DNA of 64,000 bases from Piromyces finnis finn (GCA_002104945.1 MCFH01000057.1:284584-348583), one strand, 5' to 3'; counted from the stretch's first letter, positions 28,019-64,000 are shown. Notes: generated from the letters alone by a model not told the origin. Numbers and translations are program-made.

Positions 28019-28426
28019 TTTTTCATTTCAATATCATTATATAATGGAATGATATTGAAATATCTTTGTTATTTTATTCTTTCTATTATTTACTTTTAGT
28101 TATCTTTGTTATTTTATTCCTTCTACTATTTACTTTTAGTTATTTGTTGTATTTTTAATGCAACTTTTGTTTTTAAGGCATTAAATGAATCTTTCTAAAG
28201 CCTGCAATGTGTGAATACACTTACAGAAATTTTAAATTTTTGGTCTTATCAACAGCAGAAAACTAAAATAAAAATAAAATATAAATAGATAAATAGATAG
28301 ATAGACAATACTATAATTTATTAAAGAATATTTCAAATAATAAAAATAAAATAATTAAAAATAAAAATTAAGAAATTGTTCTCAATTTCATTAGGCCTAT
28401 TAGTATATATCAAGTATAAAAAAAAT

Positions 28427-28498
28427 TGCCAACTGACGGAATTGAACCACCGACCTTCGCTTTACAAGAGCGACGCTCTACCACTAAGCCAAGCTGGC
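28427..28498 (-). tRNA. tRNA-Thr(UGU)
   Basis: 72-nt cloverleaf on the minus strand, identical to 54919-54990; anticodon arm TCGCT CT TGT AA AGCGA. Confidence 0.95.
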
Positions 28499-28504
28499 AA
28501 TAAA

Positions 28505-28597
28505 TGCTCATGGCGGGGGTCGAACCCGCGATCTTCGCGTTGCATAAGAGGATCACCCTTATAAGCACGACGCCTTAAACCTCTAGGCTACACGAGC
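28505..28597 (-). tRNA. tRNA-Ile(UAU) with 19-nt intron
   Basis: 93 nt, identical to 54820-54912; acceptor stem GCTCGTG/CATGAGC; anticodon CT TAT A followed by intron AGGGTGATCCTCTTATGCA. Confidence 0.92.
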
Positions 28598-31500
28598 ATC
28601 TTGTTGATTTCAATGTTAAGGAATGAACATAAATAGTTGAATTAGCTAGAATTTTAGGAATTAATGTGAAGATATTAACTGGATTTAAAACAAATTCAGA
28701 TAATATCTATAATTAATTAAACATAATAATTATAATTAAATAATTTCAATAATTATTTTAAAACACTTTTAAAAGTCACCTTTTAAATTTTGATTCAGTG
28801 AAAGGGTTATGATTTCAAAAATTTAATATCAATATACTATAACCCTTAACCAAAAATAAGCAAGTACGAAATAAGGTGTAACTCGCCAAAAACGATCGCT
28901 ACGGTGATGAAACTAGGTTTATTGGAAAGCTTAGGAAGAAAGCTACAATTTGGTACAATCGCGGTCCTTCTAACTGATCATTTAAGGAAGTTATGATCAT
29001 TTAAAGATTTTATTAGGTAAATTAAAATCAATATGATATCAAGTATGGATCATAAATATTTCTTATGACTTGATGAAATTAAAAATATATCAATAGGAAT
29101 TTTAGTTATATTAATTTAATTAATGATAACGATTGTTACTAAAAATAGAACTAGACCCATTTAGGTGTAACAGTTAATACCTATAAATTAAATAATCTTA
29201 ATTATTATAAAATAGGTTAACGGCAAGTTTTATTAGAAATAATTTTGAAAATAATAATTATTTAGTTATAACAAATATGTTATGGTAATATCAATTAATA
29301 ATGATGAATTATTAATTGAATAGTTTTTATAATTACTAATTAGGATCAACTGTTTAAATGATTAATCATATGTTTATTTTATTTTATGTCATGACAAACA
29401 AACAAACAAACAAACAAACAATCTTATTACTTATTTAATTATATTACTAATATATTACATGTAATACTTTATTCTTATTAATATCAATTTAATAATCTGA
29501 ACAAAGAATATAAAAGAGAATGAATTGAATTCGATTTTAATTCTTTGTAAAGATTATAGTTATAATCTTAATTATATAGTTACTTATAATATCATTTATA
29601 TTATTATTAAATAAATAAAAAAATTTATAAAAAGTTATTTTAAAGTAAATATAAATTTTTCATTTTTCATTTGGGAGTTTAAGGTGTTATTTTATAATTA
29701 AATTTAATTTCTTAAAAAACATTTTTACTATATAATTAATAACATTCTGACCTGGCCGCATAACCAAACCCAAAAACTTAACAATTAACCTTCAACTATT
29801 TATATTCCTTACTAGTGTTTAACTCTATTTTTAAAATATAAAAATTATAATATATAATTTTTATACATTTTTCTAGTAATTATTAATATTTTTATTATAT
29901 AGTTATATTATTTGTATATAGTTATTTAAGACCTTTATTATTAGTATTAGTATAATTACTTATAATATTTTATACTTATAAATTTTACAAAATTTTACTA
30001 TTAAAATAATTATAGGTATTTTATTATTATTTAAGGTTTATTTTATTAATTAACCTTATTGTATAATATTTTATAATTTGAAATTATGACATAGAATTTA
30101 ATTATAATTTTTACTAAAAGAGGCAACTGTTACACACAAAACAGAAGATACCTCGACAGAAAAATTATTATTTATGTCTAAAAAAGGGCATAATTAATTG
30201 AATAATATAATTTTATTATATGTCATAATTAAATATATAATATATGATATGCAAAAATGTTACACATATCATAAATTAAAATTTTATTAATTATAAATTA
30301 AAAAATTTTTCTATTCAAATATTAAGAGATTATTCATAATATATATTAAGGATTTAATTAATATATGTTACAGTGAATGATCCATATATTATGAATGAAA
30401 TCAATTTAAATCCTTAGCTATCCAAAACCATTAAATTTCAAATAATGGATAGTTGGAAAAAGTACGAGGATTTTTGAGAAAAAATTTTAAAAATTGAAAA
30501 ATCAAAAATAAATTAAATGAATAAAAATTAAAATTAAATAAATTTTTATTTTTATAACTATTCAAGTGTTTTGTGATATCTTATTTGAACCGTAGCATCA
30601 AAATTGGTTCCGATAATCTTTAATTTGATATCATAATTGGAACAACTTCAAGGGTTATCTCTTAATTATTAATTAACATCCATAATTATTCATATATTAT
30701 AACAACTAATATTATTTGCAAATTTTAAAAAACTGTAACATTAATCATTTTATAATAGAAAAGATTACAAAAATATTAATATCATATGATAGGAACTTTA
30801 CAGCTTGAAAAATTAAATCAAACATATTAAAACAATTATAAATTTATTTAATAAATAATTTTACTTGAGTTTGAAACTAGATTATCAGTTTTTTATTTCG
30901 GACAAAAAGAGAGTATATTTTTATGGACCAAATATTAAGTAAAATAAATGCAATATTAAAACTACAAAAATTAAATCAAAAAAGCACTTTCTCTAACATT
31001 CCAAAATAATTAATAATTAGTTTTCATTTTTAATAATAAATAATATATTTATCAGTGAGAATTTGTCCTCAATCTTTTTCAGAAGTCTAACAAATAATAT
31101 GCGTACATCATATAAATATATTATTTTATTATTAAAAATAAAAAACGTAATACTTAAATTTAAATTATAAATTTAATATCTTTCTTTATTTTTATATATA
31201 TTTTAAAACTAAATTGTTTTTAATTGTATATTAATAAATACTATTAAAATTTTATTTTCTGTTTATTTTCTCTTTAGTTTTATTCCTTCTTGGCAACATA
31301 TTGACTACCACGAACAAAGAGAAATATTTCGTAATAGCTTCGATAGTGCCTTTCTCCAAATTTTCAGAAATAATATATTTATTATTTTATATTTTATAAT
31401 AAATTATTATTTCTTCTTTTTTATTACTTTCTTTTTCCTATGTTTTAAAATACTTTGAAACTAGATAAAAAAACTAGAGAGAATAAATAACATGGAAATA

Positions 31501-54257: not shown

Positions 54258-54819
54258 GCGCCTTAACAAATACATTAAAGTTTACCATTTATTATCTAGA
54301 ATAATTAAAGGGACAAAACAAAGAATTCTTTTTATTTAAATTTCTTAGATGTAAAAGTAGTACTTATTTGTTTCTTTATTTATAGAAAATGAATTATTAT
54401 AAATTAAGCAGAATTTTATGCTTTTAAAAACAAAAATCCTACTAATATAATTATAATAACGAGTTTCATAAATTATTTAAATCAAAATTAAGCAAAAACA
54501 AATTAAACGAAAAAAAGAAGTTGTGTGAAAAAAAAAGTGAACAAATGTAAAAAAATAAAAATAAAATTTTATTTTTTTTTTAAAATAATATATATACATT
54601 ATCAAAAAAAATTGGAAAAATATAAAAATTAATAAAAACATAATATAAAATAATAAAAAATATATTATTAAAATTTTGTATGTTTTAATGAGTGTGTATT
54701 TATTTATTTCATTAATTTTATTGGAAAGAAGATATGAAAAGGTTAAGTGTATATTAAAAATTAATGGATTTGATTTGATTATATTTAAGGGTGATTAAAT
54801 AATAATAAAATTTCAACAA

Positions 54820-54912
54820 GCTCGTGTAGCCTAGAGGTTTAAGGCGTCGTGCTTATAAGGGTGATCCTCTTATGCAACGCGAAGATCGCGGGTTCGACCC
54901 CCGCCATGAGCA
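54820..54912 (+). tRNA. tRNA-Ile(UAU) with 19-nt intron
   Basis: Cloverleaf GCTCGTG TA GCCT...AGGC G TCGTG CT TAT A[agggtgatcctcttatgca]A CGCGA AGATC GCGGG TTCGACC CCCGC CATGAGC A; 74 nt when spliced. Confidence 0.92.
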
Positions 54913-54918
54913 TTCATT

Positions 54919-54990
54919 GCCAGCTTGGCTTAGTGGTAGAGCGTCGCTCTTGTAAAGCGAAGGTCGGTGGTTCAATTCCGTCAGTTGGCA
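54919..54990 (+). tRNA. tRNA-Thr(UGU)
   Basis: 72-nt cloverleaf GCCAGCT...AGTTGGC A; anticodon TGT; 6 nt downstream of tRNA-Ile and followed by a T-rich terminator. Confidence 0.95.
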
Positions 54991-55048
54991 ATTATTTTAT
55001 TTTTATTTTATTATTTTTTTTTTTTTTTGTTTAAAAGGAATATCCCTA

Positions 55049-58000
55049 CCCTCTTACCCCCCTCTTGGAAACGTGCCTTCATTTATTTAATAAATGTAGT
55101 TTCTCAAGGGGGTCTACTCATGCTCATGGTACTGAGAGAGTAGGAAGAATTAAATCCAAGCATTGCGCAATGGATGCTTGGTTAGTCTTTAAGGGAAAAT
55201 TATTAGGACTAAGCTCATGGTACTGAGCGATTAAAAAACATTTATCCATCGAATTTAAGTATTTGATGAATAAGTTGAATGTTTGATATTCAGGTAAGTT
55301 TGTATAGTATTTAATTAGAAGAGTAATACATTTTGTTGCTGTATTTTTTCTTTTATTCATGTATTCATGTAGTACTACTCTTCTCTTGTAAGAATCCAAT
55401 GTAGTCAACTTTAGCATTTGCATTGTATTTTTATATTCATGTAGCTATTGTTGTATTGTTTCTTGTAAGAGACTGATTCACTCTACATCATGTAAAAATA
55501 CTATTCACAAGCTTTCTGGTGTCGACATTCTTGATTCAAATTTTTTACCAATTTAAATATTTAATGAAAAGTAAGTCAAACAAGTTTAGTGTCAAAAAGC
55601 GAATCGAATTTACTAACAACAAACCAAAACTAGAATTTTTAAAGAAAATTTACAACTAGAATTCAAAAAAAGAAACTTTAAACAAAGCATCGTAACAATT
55701 TTTGTACTATCCAGTACTTTTAAGAAGAGAGAGAGAGACAGATTTTTTTTCCATATACGTTATATTTATAATTTTTATTAGTATTTATTTTATATTCAAT
55801 ATTTTTAATTAGAATTTATTATCATGTCAGTCCTTTATATTAAAGTCAAGAATTATATCAGACGTGGTACCCGGTCTTATGGTATCCCCTTAGATGATAT
55901 TCGCTCCTTCTTTATCCGTGGTATTCGATCATGGTCAGTAAATATGCTATGGGAAAAACTCGAGGTTATTCTAGAAGATAAATTTAATTCAGTTATTAGT
56001 GTTAAATATTTTCAGACTTTCAATGATCACTTTTTCTTAGTCAAGGTTCATGGTTCATCGAAAGATTGTATTAAAATCTTACACATGTTAAAGAAGAAAC
56101 TTTCAGTTACCTCAATTTCCTTTTCAGCTCGTAGTAGAAGGAATCACAAATACACTTTTTCCACTCTCAAACGTAAAATTTTAGTTTCTAATAAACATCA
56201 ACATTCTATTCAACAATCATTTCAACAATCAGTTCAACAATCTCATCAACAATCCGATCTTCAACTAGATCTTCAACAAGATCTTCAACAAGTTTCCAAT
56301 CATGAAAATATTCCAGATCTACAGCAAACACAATTTCAATCTCAACATTCAACAATTAATTCTAATAGCTCTATCAACTCTGATAACAGTTCAATAGTTG
56401 ATAGTTCTTCAGTTTCACAGCCATCTAGTAATAGTTCTACTTATTCCTCTGATGCATCATCCATTAATAACGATGACTTTAATAATAATAATAATAGCAA
56501 CGATTCTTCCTCATCCAACAAGCCTGATAACTTTTCTTTTTGTCTTAGTTGGAACACCAATGGGTGGAATCACGAAAAGAGAGATAGTATTAGCTATTTC
56601 ACAGCTATTTTCAAACCATTATTTTTATGTTTCCAAGAAACTGGTAATGGTTCTGGATCGAATACAGATTATCCTTGTCGTGTTACTTTGCGAAACTATA
56701 GACACTTTTTCAAGAAAGCTGACGAATCAGTTCCGGGAATGAGAGGTTTATATTTAGGTTTTCACAATTCATGTCAAGCCTCACTTGAAAACTTCTCTGG
56801 AAAGTATATTATTTCTATTTATACTTTTAGTCTCTGGAATAGATTCAAATGCTCGATTGGTAATGTTTATATGCCTCATAGTCATCACAACATCTATGTT
56901 GATCATGCAAAGTTAGAAGTTCGCTTGTGGTTACAAACTCATTCATCCCATCCATCGATTCTTGTTGGTGATTTTAATATGTCTAAAGTAAAATTATCCA
57001 ACTGGTTATCAACTAATGGATTAGGAGATTGGGAAATTCTTCCGCTTAGAGGGTCTACTATCTCTTGGACTCGAGGTGATCAATCTTCCGACATTGACCA
57101 TGCTCTTATCAATTCGAAGATGAAAGATCTTATTCACTCAGGATCATTTATAAATAATTTTTATCCTGTATCAGACCATAAGCCACTTCTTATTAATGGT
57201 AAAATTATTCCTATGGAAGATTTTTCTAATGACTTTAATGTTCCTAAGAAAATTCTGAAATGGAATAGATTAAAATGTATTGAGGAAAAGGAATCTATTC
57301 TCAGTCATAATAAATTCCAAATACTTTCAGCTAAATCCAACGATCCTAATGTTTCTACAGATGAACTTTCCAAAGAGTTTACTTCAACTGCTTTTTCAAT
57401 TGCAGACGAGCTCAGTATTACTTCAGCAAATAATGTTATAAAGTCTTCATTTCATATTTCACAACAAATTTTTAATCTTCAAAAAATCAAAATGAAGTTG
57501 TATAAGAGATTTAAAAAAGAAAGAATTTATGATATAGATGAATTTATTAAAAGAATTAAAATCTACCGTAAACTCATTGATTACATCCACAAAAGATGTA
57601 ATGAATTTAGGAAGCAAGAATATCTTCATTGGATTAAAACAGGATGTGAGTATATGAAGAGTCATAATCCTAAGAAGGCCTGGAAATGGATCAAGAAAAC
57701 TGCAAAAATTGGAAAAGATTCTTTCTTTATTGCTCAACCAATTAAAAATAAAAATGGAGAATTAGTTGTTGCTACGGAAGAACAACTAGATGTGTGGCAT
57801 GATCATTTCGAAAAGCTTGCATCAGATCCAAGTGGTGTAAGTCTTGATTTAGAGCATTGGTATGAAGAACCAATGAATAAACGTTTTTCACTTCCTATGC
57901 TTGATGAATGGGATATCAACCAAGATATTAGTATTGATGAAGTCAAGTCAGCTATCCTCACTACTCCAAATTATAAAGCATCAGGTCCGGATGGTATTCC

Positions 58001-60582
58001 AATTGAATTTTACAAAGCATTAGTTCCATCAAGTAATGATTCTAATAATGCTACAGATAATAATTCTTCTGGTAATACTACTTCAGATAATGATGCTCAT
58101 GGTTTAAATTTTATTCTTAAATTATTCAACCGTATTTGGGATGGAGATTTCCCCAACTCATGGAATGAATCCAGTATTGTTTCTATTCCTAAGAAGGGAG
58201 ATTTGACAGATTGTGATAACTATCGAGGTATATCACTTATCAATAATGGTATTAAGTTGATTTCCAAAATTGTCACCACTAGAATCTCAGAATATGGTTT
58301 AAAGAATAATTTCATTAGACCTGAACAATTTGGTTTTCGAAAAAAGGAAGAAAGTATTAGTCTTTTCATTTCAATCCAAGAAATATGCCGTAGACGTCAA
58401 TTAGATAATAAAGAGACATATTTGGCCTTTTTAGATCTCAGGAAAGCATACGATTCAGTCCCAATCGGTAATATTCTCCATAAATTAGATTGTTTAGGAA
58501 TCCGAGGTAAGAGTTTACAATTCATCAAAAATTTATATTTAACATCTAAGGCTAATGTCAAATTAGATGGACAATTCTCGAAATCTTTTGATGTGAAGAA
58601 AGGAGTCCGTCAAGGTTGCCCTCTTTCTCCTATTCTCTTTAATCTCTTTATTAATGATATATTTAGAGAGTGCGAAGATCTAGGAGTCAGTTTAGGTGAC
58701 ACTCGATGCTGTGGTGGACTTTTTGCAGATGATATAGTTATTTGTGCTCCAACAAGAGGATGCTTAAAAAAGATGCTTAGAAGAGTTAATGAATGGGCAT
58801 TGTATAATGAAATGGAATTTGGTATCCAGAAATGTTCAACGATGGTGATTCGTCCTGAATCAATAGAAAATCAGAACAAGAGAGATCCAACATTTTACTT
58901 AGCAGGACAACCCATTCCAACTACTGATTGTTATACTTATCTTGGTGTTCCATTTGATAAGAATTTGTCCCTTAAACCAGTAATTAAAGCTCTTAATAAC
59001 AAGGTTTTGAAAGGGCTTTTCTCAGTCAGTAAATTCTTAAGAAATCCTAATATTCCTATTCCTTTCAAAAAACTAGTACTTAACTCACAAGTGATTAGCA
59101 GAGTTTCATACTTTGCACCATTACTTGGATCCAACAAAGCTAGGTCTAGGATTGCTCAGAAGCATGTTAACAAAGGAATACGATGGGTTGCCGGAGTTCA
59201 TAAAGCTGTATCGTTTATATCTTTATACTCTATTTCAAAAGATTTGAATATTCCTCCATTGTCAGCCAAATGTGCGTTAGCTCAGGTTAGATGTTTTAAC
59301 AAATGGAAAAACTCAAATTGTATTATCTCACACCTTGTCAATTACATTCCTAAATTTAGAAAATACACGTGGTGCAAATCAAGTAGGACACTTGATAAAA
59401 AACTAAAGAAACATGGAGATGTTAAAGCAGTTAAAAACTTTTATTGGAAAGATCTCAAAGGGAATTCAATCAAAGCGCAATATTATGATGATAATAAATT
59501 TAGTGAAACTAAAGATTTTATTAAATTATGTTATGAGTACCCAGAGTTTGCCTATGGCTTCTACTGGCTATTGAAAGCAAGAAGCGGATACAAGTTGGAT
59601 GCTAGAGTTGCCAAAGCTGCTAAATTTGTTGATCCAGTTTGTCCTAACTACTGTCCATGTTGCAAGTGTGGAGATCAAAGTATTAAACATTGGTTATTAG
59701 ATTGTCCAACATTTAGAGATATCCGTATTAAACATTATGATTCCATAGTCCAGCTATTAAATTTTTTCAGTCAACGTAATTCCAATAGTCCTATCAATAA
59801 TAATGAAATTGATAATATCAGTAGAGATAGTAATAACATTAATAGTAATAGTAACAATAGTAATAGTAACAATAGTAATAGTAACAATAGTAATAGTAAC
59901 AATAGTAATAATAACAATAATAGAAATAATAATATTAGTAATGATAGCAATAGTGAAGATAATAATTCTAATTTAGATAGTAATTTAGTTAATGATAGTA
60001 ATAGTTCTAATAATCCGGTGAATATTAATGTGTATGATTATTCTAGTGTGTGCAGTAAAATATTTAAATTCCTTCTTGGGGGAAGAAGTTTTAACAATAT
60101 TAATTACAATTCAAGGGAATGGAAAGAACTTTGTAAGCGTCAGATTCAATCTGGTACTAATGAAGGAGCACCATTCTTGACGGTAACCGCGGAACTTCTA
60201 ACCAAAATCATGCCTTTTGCTATTGGCCAGCAATGGTCAATGTTCAAAAGGTTTGAAGCAACATCCAAGAGCGTCAATGCTGAAGAAACAGTAAGACAGG
60301 CCAGGAGGGCCAGCGCAACCAATGGAGATCATAATTTTGTTCCATGACAAAATTTTGATCTTTGGCTCGGTGTCCCATTGGAAGTCAAATACAATTATTA
60401 TACTTTAGTATGATAGTGGCTTTCTTACTTTAATTAAAATTACTAGAATACATTATACCCAATTTTTATTCATTTGTGTTTATTTAAACATATTTTTTTT
60501 ATTTTTATTTTATTTTAATTTTTATATTTCATGTATTATAATTTTAATTAAATTAATAATAAAGTTTAAAATATTTGATGCC

Positions 60583-60639
<57 letters not shown>
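55049..60639 (+). mobile_element. Full-length non-LTR retrotransposon (LINE), copy 1: one 5' monomer, ~640-nt unique 5' UTR, single ORF, 3' UTR and 54-nt poly(A)
   Basis: ORF 55824-60347; AATAAA at 60558-60563; A-run at 60586-60639; CCCTCTTACCC at both 55049-55059 and 60640-60650 (candidate TSD). Confidence 0.95.
55824..60347 (+). CDS. LINE polyprotein, 1507 aa: RRM-like N-terminus, Q/S/N linker, APE endonuclease, reverse transcriptase, CCHC zinc finger
   Basis: APE motifs: SWNTNG, LCFQET, GDFN, TISWTR, SDIDHAL, SDHKPL. RT motifs: KASGPDGIP, YRGISL, QFGFR, FLDLRKAYDSV, GVRQGCPLSPILFNLFI, FADD, YTYLG. Zinc finger: CPCCKCGDQSIKHWLLDC. Confidence 0.96.
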   Translation: MSVLYIKVKNYIRRGTRSYGIPLDDIRSFFIRGIRSWSVNMLWEKLEVILEDKFNSVISVKYFQTFNDHFFLVKVHGSSKDCIKILHMLKKKLSVTSISFSARSRRNHKYTFSTLKRKILVSNKHQHSIQQSFQQSVQQSHQQSDLQLDLQQDLQQVSNHENIPDLQQTQFQSQHSTINSNSSINSDNSSIVDSSSVSQPSSNSSTYSSDASSINNDDFNNNNNSNDSSSSNKPDNFSFCLSWNTNGWNHEKRDSISYFTAIFKPLFLCFQETGNGSGSNTDYPCRVTLRNYRHFFKKADESVPGMRGLYLGFHNSCQASLENFSGKYIISIYTFSLWNRFKCSIGNVYMPHSHHNIYVDHAKLEVRLWLQTHSSHPSILVGDFNMSKVKLSNWLSTNGLGDWEILPLRGSTISWTRGDQSSDIDHALINSKMKDLIHSGSFINNFYPVSDHKPLLINGKIIPMEDFSNDFNVPKKILKWNRLKCIEEKESILSHNKFQILSAKSNDPNVSTDELSKEFTSTAFSIADELSITSANNVIKSSFHISQQIFNLQKIKMKLYKRFKKERIYDIDEFIKRIKIYRKLIDYIHKRCNEFRKQEYLHWIKTGCEYMKSHNPKKAWKWIKKTAKIGKDSFFIAQPIKNKNGELVVATEEQLDVWHDHFEKLASDPSGVSLDLEHWYEEPMNKRFSLPMLDEWDINQDISIDEVKSAILTTPNYKASGPDGIPIEFYKALVPSSNDSNNATDNNSSGNTTSDNDAHGLNFILKLFNRIWDGDFPNSWNESSIVSIPKKGDLTDCDNYRGISLINNGIKLISKIVTTRISEYGLKNNFIRPEQFGFRKKEESISLFISIQEICRRRQLDNKETYLAFLDLRKAYDSVPIGNILHKLDCLGIRGKSLQFIKNLYLTSKANVKLDGQFSKSFDVKKGVRQGCPLSPILFNLFINDIFRECEDLGVSLGDTRCCGGLFADDIVICAPTRGCLKKMLRRVNEWALYNEMEFGIQKCSTMVIRPESIENQNKRDPTFYLAGQPIPTTDCYTYLGVPFDKNLSLKPVIKALNNKVLKGLFSVSKFLRNPNIPIPFKKLVLNSQVISRVSYFAPLLGSNKARSRIAQKHVNKGIRWVAGVHKAVSFISLYSISKDLNIPPLSAKCALAQVRCFNKWKNSNCIISHLVNYIPKFRKYTWCKSSRTLDKKLKKHGDVKAVKNFYWKDLKGNSIKAQYYDDNKFSETKDFIKLCYEYPEFAYGFYWLLKARSGYKLDARVAKAAKFVDPVCPNYCPCCKCGDQSIKHWLLDCPTFRDIRIKHYDSIVQLLNFFSQRNSNSPINNNEIDNISRDSNNINSNSNNSNSNNSNSNNSNSNNSNNNNNRNNNISNDSNSEDNNSNLDSNLVNDSNSSNNPVNINVYDYSSVCSKIFKFLLGGRSFNNINYNSREWKELCKRQIQSGTNEGAPFLTVTAELLTKIMPFAIGQQWSMFKRFEATSKSVNAEETVRQARRASATNGDHNFVP

Positions 60640-60641
<2 letters not shown>

Positions 60642-60661
60642 CTCTTACCCTCTTGGGAAAT

Positions 60662-61334
60662 CCCTCTTGGGAACGTGCCTTCATTTATTTAATAAATGTA
60701 GTTTCTCAAGGGGGTCTACTCATGCTCATGGTACTGAGAGAGTAGAAAGAATTAAATCCAAGTATTGCGCAATGGATGCTTGGTGCCCTCTTAGGAACGT
60801 GCCTTCATTTATTTAATAATGGAGTTTATCAAGGGGGTCTACTCATGCTCATGGTACTGAGAGAGTAGAAAGAGCCCTCTTGGGAACGTGCCTTCATTTA
60901 TTTAATAAATGTAGTTTCTCAAGGGGGTCTACTCATGCTCATGGTACTGAGAGAGTAGAAAGAATTAAATCCAAGTATTGCGCAATGGATGCTTGGTGCC
61001 CTCTTAGGAATGTGCCTTCATTTATTTAATAAATGTAATTTCTCAAGGGGGTCTACTCATGCTCATGGTACTGAGAGAGTAGAAAGAGCCCTCTTGGGAA
61101 CGTGCCTTCATTTATTTAATAAATGTAGTTTCTCAAGGGGGTCTACTCATGCTCATGGTACTGAGAGAGTAGAAAGAATTAAATCCAAGTATTGCGCAAT
61201 GGATGCTTGGTGCCCTCTTAGGAATGTGCCTTCATTTATTTAATAAATGTAATTTCTCAAGGGGGTCTACTCATGCTCATGGTACTGAGAGAGTAGAAAG
61301 AATTAAATCCAAGCATTGCGCAATGGATGCTTGG
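60662..61334 (+). repeat. Six-unit tandem array of LINE 5' monomers (124, 89, 124, 90, 124, ~122 bp)
   Basis: Units start at 60662, 60786, 60875, 60999, 61089, 61213 (CCCTCTTRGGAA). Long units carry an extra ~34-bp module, ATTAAATCCAAGYATTGCGCAATGGATGCTTGGTG. Confidence 0.95.
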
Positions 61335-61980
61335 TTAGTCTTCAAGGGAAAATTATTAGGACTAAGCTCATGGTACTGAGCGATTAAAAAACATTTTATT
61401 CATCAAATTTAAGTATTTGATGAATAAGTGAATGTTTGATTTTTCAGGTAAGTTTGTATAGTATTTAATTAGAAGAGTAATACATTTTGTTGCTGTATTT
61501 TTTCTTTTATTCATGTATTCATGTAGTACTACTCTTCTCTTGTAAGAATCCAATGTAGTCAACTTTAGCATTTGCATTGTACTTTTATATTCATGTAGCT
61601 ATTGTTGTATTGTTTCTTGTAAGAGACTGATTCACTCTACATCATGTAAAAATACTATTCACAAGCTTTCTGGTGTCGACATTCTTGATTCAAATTTTTT
61701 ACCAATTTAAATATTTAATGAAAAGTAAAGTCAAACAAGTTTAGTGTCAAAAAGCGAATCGAATTTACTAACAACAAACCAAAACTAGAATTTTTAAAGA
61801 AAATTTACAACTAGAATTCAAAAAAAAAAGAAACTTTAAACAAAGCATCGTAACAATTTTTGTACTATCCAGTACTTTTAAGAAGAGAGAGAGAGACAGA
61901 TTTTTTTCCATATACGTTATATTTGTAATTTTTATTAGTATTTATTTTATATTCAATATTTTTAATTAGAATTAATTATC

Positions 61981-64000
61981 ATGTCAGTCCTTTATATTAA
62001 AGATAAGAATTATATCAGACGTGGTACCCGGTCTTATGGTATCCCCTTAGATGATATTCGCTCCTTCTTTATCCGTGGTATTCGATCATGGTCAGTAAAT
62101 ATGCTATGGGAAAAACTCGAGGTTATTCTAGAAGATAAATTTAATTCAGTTATTAGTGTTAAATATTTTCAAACTTTCAATGATCACTTTTTCTTAGTCA
62201 AGGTTCATGGTTCATCAAAAGATTGTATTAAAATCTTACACATGTTAAAGAAGAAACTTTCAGTTACCTCAATTTCCTTTTCAGCTCGTAGTAGAAGGAA
62301 TCACAAATACACTTTTTCCACTCTCAAACGTAAAATTTTAGTTTCTAATAAATATCAACATTCTATTCAACAATCATTTCAACAATCAGTTCAACAATCA
62401 GTTCAACAATCTCATCAACAATCCGATCTTCAACAAGATCTTCAACAGGATCTTCAACAAGTTTCCCATCATGAAAATATTCCAGATCTACAGCAAACAC
62501 AATTTCAATCTCAACATTCAACAATTAATTCTAATAGTTCTATCAACTCTGATAACAGTTCAATAGTTGATAGTTCTTCAGTTTCACAGCCATCTAGTAA
62601 TAGTTCTACTTATTCCTCTGATGCATCATCCATTAATAACGATGACTTTAATAATAATAATAATAGCAACGATTCTTCCTCATACAACAAGCCTGATAAC
62701 TTTTCTTTTTGTCTTAGTTGGAACACCAATGGGTGGAATCATGAAAAGAGAGATAGTATTAGCTATTTCACAGCTATTTTCAAACCATTATTCTTATGTT
62801 TCCAAGAAACTGGTAATGGTTCTAGATTGAATACAGATTATCCTTGTCGTGTTACTTTGCGAAACTATAGACACTTTTTCAAGAAAGCTGACGAATCAGT
62901 TCCGGGAATGAGAGGTTTATATTTAGGTTTTCACAATTCGTGTCAAGCCTCACTTGAAAACTTCTCTGGAAAGTATATTATTTCTATTTATACTTTTAGT
63001 CTCTGGAATAGATTCAAATGCTCGATTGGAAATGTTTATATGCCTCATAGTCATCACAACATCTATGTTGATCATGCAAAGTTAGAAGTTCGCTTGTGGT
63101 TACAAACTCATTCATCCCATCCATCGATTCTTGTTGGTGATTTTAATATGTCTAAAGTAAAATTATCCAACTGGTTATCAACTAATGGATTAGGAGATTG
63201 GGAAATTCTTCCGCTTAGAGGGTCTACTATCTCTTGGACTCGAGGTGATCAATCTTCCGACATTGACCATGCTCTTATCAATTCGAAGATGAAAGATCTT
63301 ATTCACTCAGGATCATTTATAAATAATTTTTATCCTGTATCAGACCATAAGCCACTTCTTATTAATGGTAAAATTATTCCTATGGATGATTTTTCTAATG
63401 ACTTTAATGTTCCTAAGAAAATTCTGAAATGGAATAGATTAAAATGTATTGAGGAAAAGGAATCTATTCTCAGTCATAATAAATTCCAAATACTTTCAGC
63501 AAAATCCAGCGATCCTAATGTTTCTACAGATGAACTTTCCAAAGAGTTTACTTCAACTGCTTTTTCAATTGCAGACGAGCTCAGTATTACTTCAGCAAAT
63601 AATGTTATAAAGTCTTCATTTCATATTTCACAACAAATTTTTAATCTTCAAAAAATCAAAATGAAGTTGTATAAGAGATTTAAAAAAGAAAGAATTTATG
63701 ATATAGATGAATTTATTAAAAGAATTAAAATCTACCGTAAACTCATTGATTACATCCACAAAAGATGTAATGAATTTAGGAAGCAAGAATATCTTCATTG
63801 GATTAAAACAGGATGTGAGTATATGAAGAGTCATAATCCTAAGAAGGCCTGGAAATGGATCAAGAAAACTGCAAAAATTGGAAAAGATTCCTTCTTTATT
63901 GCTCAACCAATTAAAAATAAAAATGGAGAATTAGTTGTTGCTACGGAAGAACAACTAGATGTGTGGCATGATCATTTCGAAAAGCTTGCATCAGATCCAA
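61981..64000 (+). CDS. LINE copy 2 polyprotein, N-terminal ~673 codons, apparently open to the window edge
   Basis: Same frame and sequence as copy 1 with few substitutions and one 12-bp in-frame insertion. No in-frame stop was seen at the differences checked. It is absent from the ORF track, probably because it has no stop inside the window. Confidence 0.85.
   Translation, partial: MSVLYIKDKNYIRRGTRSYGIPLDDIRSFFIRGIRSWSVNMLWEKLEVILEDKFNSVISVKYFQTFNDHFFLVKVHGSSKDCIKILHMLKKKLSVTSISFSARSRRNHKYTFSTLKRKILVSNKYQHSIQQSFQQSVQQSVQQSHQQSDLQQDLQQDLQQVSHHENIPDLQQTQFQSQHSTINSNSSINSDNSSIVDSSSVSQPSSNSSTYSSDASSINNDDFNNNNNSNDSSSYNKPDNFSFCLSWNTNGWNHEKRDSISYFTAIFKPLFLCFQETGNGSRLNTDYPCRVTLRNYRHFFKKADESVPGMRGLYLGFHNSCQASLENFSGKYIISIYTFSLWNRFKCSIGNVYMPHSHHNIYVDHAKLEVRLWLQTHSSHPSILVGDFNMSKVKLSNWLSTNGLGDWEILPLRGSTISWTRGDQSSDIDHALINSKMKDLIHSGSFINNFYPVSDHKPLLINGKIIPMDDFSNDFNVPKKILKWNRLKCIEEKESILSHNKFQILSAKSSDPNVSTDELSKEFTSTAFSIADELSITSANNVIKSSFHISQQIFNLQKIKMKLYKRFKKERIYDIDEFIKRIKIYRKLIDYIHKRCNEFRKQEYLHWIKTGCEYMKSHNPKKAWKWIKKTAKIGKDSFFIAQPIKNKNGELVVATEEQLDVWHDHFEKLASDP

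Follow-up and report, generated by a model that had tools for sequence, protein, structure and literature searches.

The tandem 5' units of a Piromyces finnis LINE as probable copies of a structured, putatively pseudoknotted RNA head

The locus and its two LINE copies

The window analysed here is a 64-kb stretch of very AT-rich DNA from the anaerobic gut fungus Piromyces finnis (C186:284584-348583, in an assembly of 56,455,805 bases and 232 contigs from which all genome-wide counts below are taken). It carries two copies of a long interspersed nuclear element (LINE), arranged head-to-tail and 3' of two tRNA genes, and the subject of this report is the array of short tandem units with which these copies begin. 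On balance, we favour the view that the units are copies of a 5'-terminal RNA head, born by template switching and inherited by retrotransposition, and that the head itself is a cis-acting RNA. Copy 1 extends from 55060 to a poly(A) tail at 60586-60639 (delimited by Tandem Repeats Finder, TRF) and contains a single open reading frame (ORF) of 1507 amino acids on the + strand (55824-60347), with a reverse transcriptase (RT) domain (Pfam RVT_1, 1.2e-35) beside weak matches to an apurinic/apyrimidinic endonuclease (APE) domain (Exo_endo_phos, 4e-4) and to zf-RVT (2e-3). Copy 2 starts at 60640, and its 3' part extends past the end of the window. An exact-protein look-up of the 1507-amino-acid ORF returned no match; homologues with 45-62% identity, carrying APE and RT domains, lie on contigs from other anaerobic fungi, those named being Orpinomyces and Neocallimastix. 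A first guess, the Dictyostelium element TRE3, had been prompted by the AT-rich DNA and the position 3' of a tRNA gene, and was discarded in view of these named homologues. The element is a young and very active single-ORF LINE with an APE-type endonuclease, hosted by an anaerobic gut fungus.

Base-by-base reading of the two 5' ends places one unit in copy 1 and six in copy 2, as an earlier, sequence-only reading of this DNA had proposed. That reading put the unit of copy 1 at 55061-55181; it is indeed a single unit, of the A-type subfamily, but its limits are 55060-55182 (+ strand, as are all array features given here), and the fold of the copy 1 head has z = -4.0 (55060-55209). In copy 2 the six units occupy 60662-61335 in the order L-S-L-S-L-L, with L units of 124 nt and S units of 89-90 nt, and TRF reports a 214-bp period with 3.0 copies and 98% matches over 60662-61301. 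Unit 1 (60662-60785) is an L unit of 124 nt and canonical type; unit 3 (60875-60998), also L, is identical to it and serves as the reference unit, and unit 5 (61089-61212) is again a canonical L unit. Unit 2 (60786-60874), an S' unit of 89 nt, contains only the first two of the hairpins described below (H1 and H2) on a AATAATGGAG-type body and ends at base 89 plus a G, and unit 4 (60999-61088), an S unit of 90 nt and of the same type as unit 6, is likewise cut at base 89 plus a G. The S units lack the third hairpin because an S unit is an L unit that ends at this point. Unit 6 (61213-61335), the last, is of B type (G8A, C13U and G40A) and runs into the unique untranslated region (UTR).

The diagnostic bases on which the earlier reading had based an expansion by 213-214-bp dimers are as it described them, and units 4 and 6 do share them; unit 2, however, is no plain copy of unit 4 but a mosaic, with a AATAATGGAG-type first half of a kind that occurs at loci L015, L037 and L040, and with the common S junction as its 3' end. 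For the lineage of the window, the expansion by dimers is itself right. Both copies are preceded by micro-heads of 5-14 nt, short re-starts of the unit sequence that lie, for copy 1, at 55044-55059 (CCCTA, CCCTCTTA and CCC, from unit bases 1-8) and, for copy 2, at 60640-60661, directly 3' of the copy 1 poly(A) tail (two micro-heads, bases 1-7 followed by A and bases 1-12 followed by AT); re-starts of the same kind are found at many other loci. A further hexaloop hairpin, GCUCA-UGGUAC-UGAGC, recurs in the unique UTR of both copies, at 61366-61381 and, as its counterpart in copy 1, at 55213-55228, where it had been noticed before.

Fold of the head and covariation across LINE families

The unit has a pronounced predicted fold on the sense strand (z = -4.7, with 0/200 shuffles as good), compared with z = -2.9 on the antisense strand. 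All stems named in the sequence-only reading are present in the minimum-free-energy fold, in which H1 is the stem of the extreme 5' end (CCC... with ...GGG), interrupted by a bulge of about 8 nt, H2 is a hairpin with a six-base loop, and H3 is a hairpin with the loop UGCGCAAUG(G). In unit 6 these predicted parts fall at 61213-61265 (H1), 61266-61297 (H2) and 61309-61334 (H3). A pseudoknot that the sequence-only reading had not listed is proposed in addition, formed between unit bases 14-18 in the H1 bulge (GUGCC, 61226-61230 in unit 6, with the same bases taking this part in every unit) and the last five bases (GGUAC, 61281-61285) of the H2 hexaloop (61280-61285).

The 5' ends of about six further LINE families (L051; L052/L059/L105/L119; L053/L121; L054/L120; L076/L093; L123) and of a partial seventh (L124) were compared with the head of the window, and a metagenome scan with a conserved UTR block yielded 64 loci, 7 of them relevant; a search of the P. 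finnis genome with the same block found no second LINE family. All compared families start with CCC, and at eight other loci the first 90-150 nt fold with z between -2.3 and -5.0 relative to shuffles. For the H2 hexaloop hairpin, 85% of the cells are paired (59% when shuffled, 33-46% with the partner slid) and 6/6 pairs have changed on both sides; for H3 the corresponding values are 92.6% (66.5% shuffled, 24-54% slid) and 7/9 pairs, and for the pseudoknot 35/35 cells (90.6% shuffled, 12-46% slid) and 3/5 pairs. None of 500 shuffles reached the observed paired share for H2, for H3 or for the pseudoknot. For H1, scored by plain stacking, 62 of 77 cells are paired, a value reached by 28 of 5040 permuted arrangements of the 3' arms; its seven G.U pairs, set against two A.C mismatches, point to the sense strand as the one that folds. 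On the evidence of these comparisons, the hairpins H1, H2 and H3 have been retained in at least six related LINE families of other anaerobic fungi by means of compensatory changes. The structured RNA that the earlier reading had offered as one possibility is thus borne out, with the hairpins and the added pseudoknot covarying across related families.

The bulge that would provide the 5' strand of the pseudoknot lies on the 5' side of H1 and measures about 8 nt in the window, L052/L119, L076 and L123, and the same bases sit in a large H1 loop in L053/L121. In the window, L051, L052/L119, L076, L124, L123, L121 and L053, bases 14-18 (or 15-19) and the last five hexaloop bases of H2 are complementary, through strands that differ from family to family. 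Given as bulge and hexaloop strand, they read GUGCC/GGUAC in the window, GUACC/GGUGC in L051, GUACU/AGUAC in L052, L119, L076 and L124, ACACC/GGUGU in L123, CCGUA/UACGG in L121 and CCGUA/UGCGG in L053. The count of 35/35 paired cells comes from an unedited MAFFT alignment of seven sequences; L053 and L121 were brought into the pairing comparison by script, not by MAFFT. When the comparison is limited to five independent families, 25/25 cells are paired, 2 of 120 permutations are as good, and slid controls pair in 4-11 of 25 cells. A 5-bp pseudoknot of bulge bases 14-18 with the H2 loop is, on these comparisons, well supported but not proven.

Known ribozyme classes were sought in the same sequences. 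At E <= 10, the Rfam models matched only the two tRNAs and, at chance level, a preQ1 riboswitch in the ORF (18.7 bits, E = 4.8) over 54500-64000; the HDV-type (hepatitis delta virus) models gave no match in this interval or in nine related loci, and the covariance models for hammerhead, twister, twister-sister, pistol and hatchet gave none in the window or those loci. The heads of the element and of the nine related loci hence belong to no known ribozyme class at this threshold, as the earlier reading had judged by eye. A hammerhead reading of the H2 string CUGAGAG...GAAAG was rejected for want of room for stem II. In the pistol ribozyme, the loop of a hairpin pairs with an internal loop in the neighbouring stem. 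The P. finnis head resembles it in having a hairpin loop paired with an internal loop or bulge on the 5' side of the stem next to it, which is likewise made of two parts; in the head, however, these parts come in reversed order, there is no Rfam match, and no membership is claimed. A pistol-like reading was also rejected, since the pistol cut falls inside the fold and would remove bases 1-37, which every genomic copy retains. HDV-like ribozymes cut at base +1 of their P1 helix. The head has H1 starting at base 1 and pseudoknot strands in HDV-like order, but the 3' strand lies inside a hairpin loop, and the HDV-like core features (the P3/L3 hairpin, P1.1 and the conserved catalytic C) were not found in the compared families.

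Unit number and junctions across the genome

The genome has 593 occurrences of a 33-nt unit core used as query, and the reversed control has 0. These 593 cores go with 359 junctions of a last unit to the UTR, 242 junctions of an L unit to a next unit and 5 S junctions (two in the window and one each on C179, C68 and C65). The copy number of the unit is variable across the genome, as had been suggested from the two copies of the window, with 1 to 6 heads per array and two as the commonest number; the largest array seen has six units. Forty head-to-UTR junctions were sampled without bias. About 31 of the arrays begin at unit base 1, to within 2 nt, beside unrelated flank, and these comprise 13 arrays of one unit, 16 of two, 2 of two plus a partial unit and 1 of three; about 8 arrays are cut short inside a unit. 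Among sampled arrays, those of three or more units are private or shared by at most 3 loci.

The L-S-L-L part of the window array recurs with 100% identity on C179 and C68 between different flanks, and this four-unit array has therefore been inherited by retrotransposition; the window copy consists of the inherited L-S-L-L plus one further L-S step. The locus at C65:6630-7930 (L154) has the same flank as that at C68:457885-461098 (L003), with single-base differences in homopolymers; the small contig C65 is probably an assembly duplicate of the C68 locus, and should therefore not add to the number of insertions. In the common two-unit form, G8A is present in the second unit and creates an A.C mismatch in H1, and the single-unit copies with a precise start all belong to the other subfamily.

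A survey of 106 distinct unit starts shows unrelated flank before 62 of them, a poly(A) tail before 2 and element sequence before 42. All 42 distinct internal junctions are of the form [1..x][1..], with the downstream partner at base 1. Twenty-eight of the 42 are not of L type; their x values lie between 12 and 745, their fillers consist of 0-2 A/T bases, and in 10 of these 28 out-of-register junctions x falls at a hot spot of 65-68 (for example at L008, L031, L032, L034, L036 and L151). The hot spot lies just 5' of the hexaloop that would form the pseudoknot, and no microhomology that would account for it was found. As far as genomic copies can tell, unit base 1 would be the 5' end of the element RNA.

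Some further junctions were observed in the same material. Four copies (L044, L128, L129 and L162, on C1 and C79) are truncated, at unit bases 57, 54, 45 and 29, and lie directly 3' of the poly(A) tail of another copy; either the RT jumped between RNAs onto a 3' end, or these copies were inserted into A-tails. At L042 (C1:861100-863300) and L155 (C68:118700-120000), a fragment of the element's own RT-coding sequence (GGAGTCCGTCAAGGTT...) stands directly 5' of a full head, the breakpoints differing between the loci, and at L042 the poly(A) tail of another copy precedes the fragment; judged by their sequence, these fragments are another trace of template switching. In the metagenome, contig L120 starts inside an upstream unit of about 150 nt (L120:1-145) that belongs to a different LINE family, and L054, of the family of L120, has an internal head duplication of about 58 nt (L054:83-190); head repetition is therefore not peculiar to the P. 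finnis genome.

The remaining 5' UTR and the neighbouring tRNA genes

Downstream of the heads, the 5' UTR of each family contains a cluster of 8-13 UGUA motifs with spacings of about 10-25 nt (z between 1.2 and 3.2 relative to shuffles), located in the window at 55301-55495 and 61455-61650 and found likewise in L051, L052, L053, L054, L119, L120 and L123. The UTRs also hold 9-14 upstream AUGs per family 5' of the ORF, and cluster and AUGs together may form a binding array for some RNA-binding protein or indicate that translation is cap-independent. A UTR block, GTAAGAGnnTGATTCACTCTA..TGTA (55465-55494 and 61619-61648), is kept in all families, and within it a small AGAG/CUCU stem has undergone a compensatory change, to GGAG/CUCC, in L054, L120 and L124. 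A 5' UTR intron (GTAAGT at about 61447) was considered and dropped; it is not conserved in other families.

The two tRNA genes 5' of copy 1 are a tRNA-Thr(UGU) gene at 54918-54991 (+ strand; ARAGORN, and Rfam tRNA with 67.9 bits), 52 nt upstream of the start of copy 1, and a second tRNA gene at 54820-54912 (+ strand; ARAGORN/Rfam) to which ARAGORN assigns no type. The pair, made up of the ARAGORN-untyped gene of 93-95 nt and tRNA-Thr(UGU), is present twice in the window in opposite orientations, at 28426-28598 (-) and 54820-54991 (+).

Discussion

The P. finnis element has the organization of a LINE 5' monomer array, with tandem 5' repeats upstream of a unique UTR and ORF and a unit number that differs between copies. 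The return of 42/42 internal junctions to base 1 is the mark expected of RT template switching, and suggests that the arrays are mostly by-products of reverse transcription. Template jumping and the addition of untemplated bases are known for the RTs of non-LTR (long terminal repeat) elements (PMC8857657, PMC8594491, PMC2718515). In the process envisaged here, the RT would reach the RNA's 5' end, move onto a second template at some internal position x and make another copy of the head, to yield a product [1..x][1..], in which x = 123 plus a G would give an L unit and x = 89 plus a G an S unit. With repeats in place, re-annealing of the new DNA end would be possible at any unit start, and the resulting growth in register would have given the 214-bp L-S step of the window; the finished arrays would then be passed on by retrotransposition. 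The G that stands before the restart at L and S junctions was considered as a signal derived from the cap, yet genomic 5' junctions show no excess of G and the fillers at other junctions are A or T, so that this signal is unusable.

The alternative that survives best, which we hold to be possible though doubtful, is that the array is an additive or tunable internal promoter, with each unit a DNA-level Pol II module that initiates at its own first base, and with more units giving more transcription. The monomers of mouse L1 and the A-module of TRE5-A are the precedents for additive promoters of this kind. The mouse L1 (A, Gf and Tf) and TRE5-A repeats share with those of the P. finnis LINE a tandem arrangement at the 5' end upstream of a unique UTR, a number that varies between copies and a dimer step. 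The P. finnis unit differs from them in being a covarying RNA fold and a putative promoter, in belonging to an early-diverging fungal host, and in having all its junctions at the first base of the RNA, which points to template switching. A dispersed LINE with at least 359 heads at many sites, and with hundreds of full-length copies that are nearly identical, needs a promoter of its own, for which the head is the obvious site. Moreover, 5' ends lie exactly at the unit start, and the pyrimidine run with which the unit begins, CCCUCUU, resembles a TCT/TOP-type initiator. A promoter would also be compatible with an RNA fold, and in L1Tc of Trypanosoma cruzi the first 77 nt (Pr77/L1TcRz) combine an internal promoter with an HDV-like ribozyme (PMC3185411, PMC3383444). 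Across families, however, it is the pairing that is kept and not the sequence, with GUAC-like motifs swapped for ACACC/GGUGU and CCGUA/UACGG and the pairing intact, unlike the way in which protein-binding DNA motifs evolve. The restriction of arrays of three or more units to private or at most 3 loci means that no gain from extra units is visible, the samples contain no copy whose start is the second unit of the usual two-unit form, and the junction pattern marks the arrays as copying by-products. A promoter may still overlap the head at the DNA level.

A different objection concerns the origin of the arrays, which could have grown after insertion by DNA events, such as unequal crossing-over or replication slippage, with no template switching. 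The extra L-S step of the window is in register and free of filler bases, as crossing-over would give, and the 214-bp period is clean. Neither unequal crossing-over nor slippage, however, gives a reason for a universal restart at base 1, and both are disfavoured for that reason: growth in DNA accounts neither for the 28/28 out-of-register junctions at base 1, with their short A/T fillers, nor for the micro-heads before both copies, and the mosaic of two unit types in unit 2 fits copy-choice between two RNAs. We therefore regard growth by DNA events alone as improbable.

Least probable of the alternatives, by a small step below growth in DNA, is a new self-cleaving ribozyme. By cutting at its own first base, each head would release the RNA of the LINE from read-through transcripts, which is the role that HDV-like ribozymes have in R2, RTE and L1Tc. 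The 5' end is precise and C-initial in every family and coincides with the first base of a helix; the order H1(5')-PK(5')-inner hairpin-H1(3')-...-PK(3'), where PK stands for the pseudoknot, resembles P1-P2-P3-P1'-P2' of HDV; many copies lie directly 3' of a tRNA gene or of the poly(A) tail of another copy, where self-cleavage had been thought useful; the UTR has its 9-14 upstream AUGs; and the 5' junctions are without an excess of extra G. The lack of any family match at E <= 10 in the window and nine related loci stands against this, as does the lack of a conserved unpaired core: the 3' pseudoknot strand is preceded by U, C or G, which leaves no conserved catalytic C, and the inner hairpin that would stand in for P3/L3 is variable and, in L053/L121, absent. 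HDV-like ribozymes usually have a G.U wobble at +1, whereas base +1 of the head is C. Furthermore, the 242 L junctions are inherited uncut, and so is the L-S-L-L array, whose internal unit equals its first, 5'-most unit. A ribozyme in every unit, one of the functions that the sequence-only reading had put forward, is hence argued against, and it is unlikely that every unit cleaves itself efficiently; a new ribozyme that is weak or depends on context may exist. The module Pr77 of L1Tc offers a partial parallel, as a conserved structured module at base 1 of an APE-type LINE that is common to related elements and in which cleavage site and transcription start coincide at base 1, but the P. finnis head is without the HDV-like core (P3/L3, P1.1 and catalytic C) and without an Rfam match, and is tandemly repeated, with the repeats inherited uncut.

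For the head as a cis-acting RNA, the nearest parallel is the 5' pseudoknot RNA of R2, to which the R2 protein binds. By this analogy, the head would most likely serve as a handle for the element's own protein and for the handling of the 5' end, and head copies past the first one or two would be by-products rather than a tuned dial. The R2 5' RNA combines an HDV-like ribozyme with a conserved 5' pseudoknot (PMC3774820), and R2 also has variable 5' junctions and an RT known for template jumping (PMC2718515, PMC8857657). Like the P. finnis LINE, R2 is a single-ORF element with a conserved pseudoknot in its 5' RNA, and no homology of sequence or architecture is claimed. R2 has a restriction-like endonuclease and is specific for ribosomal DNA, whereas the P. 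finnis element is APE-type and dispersed; its head has a different fold architecture, and protein binding by it is putative.

Several points weigh against reading the array as template-switched copies of a cis-acting RNA head. The families compared number about six independent ones, some of which are close kin of one another. When the bulge is shuffled family by family, p is 0.03-0.2 for each, a weak result that leaves the case for the pseudoknot with the cross-family test, and in L054/L120, which keeps H1, no clear counterpart of the pseudoknot was found. The placing of the RNA 5' end at base 1 is drawn from genomic copies, and the gain of units in register, including the last L-S step of the window, fits unequal crossing-over in DNA equally well. 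The proposed binding of a protein is taken from analogy, and a promoter role at the DNA level is possibly the main function.

A further possibility, unlikely though less so than growth by DNA events, is that the head represents a new functional RNA class of the APE-type LINEs of early-diverging fungi. In one version, it may be an unrecognised self-cleaving or nuclease-guiding fold that makes the C-initiated 5' end. In the other, it may be a kissing or dimerisation module that joins two RNAs through bulge and hexaloop or through the palindromic UUGCGCAA loop of H3. If the latter were true, two templates would be held together, template switching at the 5' end would follow and monomer arrays would result, and the genome would be a readable record of the birth of LINE 5' monomers.

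The 5' monomer arrays of LINEs have long been known and are poorly explained. In P. finnis, dozens of young copies keep the intermediates (micro-heads, partial heads, L units and S units), all of which go back to base 1, and these intermediates make an origin by template switching directly readable and testable. The head, a covarying and putatively pseudoknotted RNA that has no Rfam entry and is common to LINE families across anaerobic gut fungi, offers a well-defined starting point for the question of how the 5' end of a single-ORF, APE-type LINE is recognised and completed by the element itself, and mutants that change the sequence of the head but preserve its pairing would separate a promoter function in DNA from a function in RNA.

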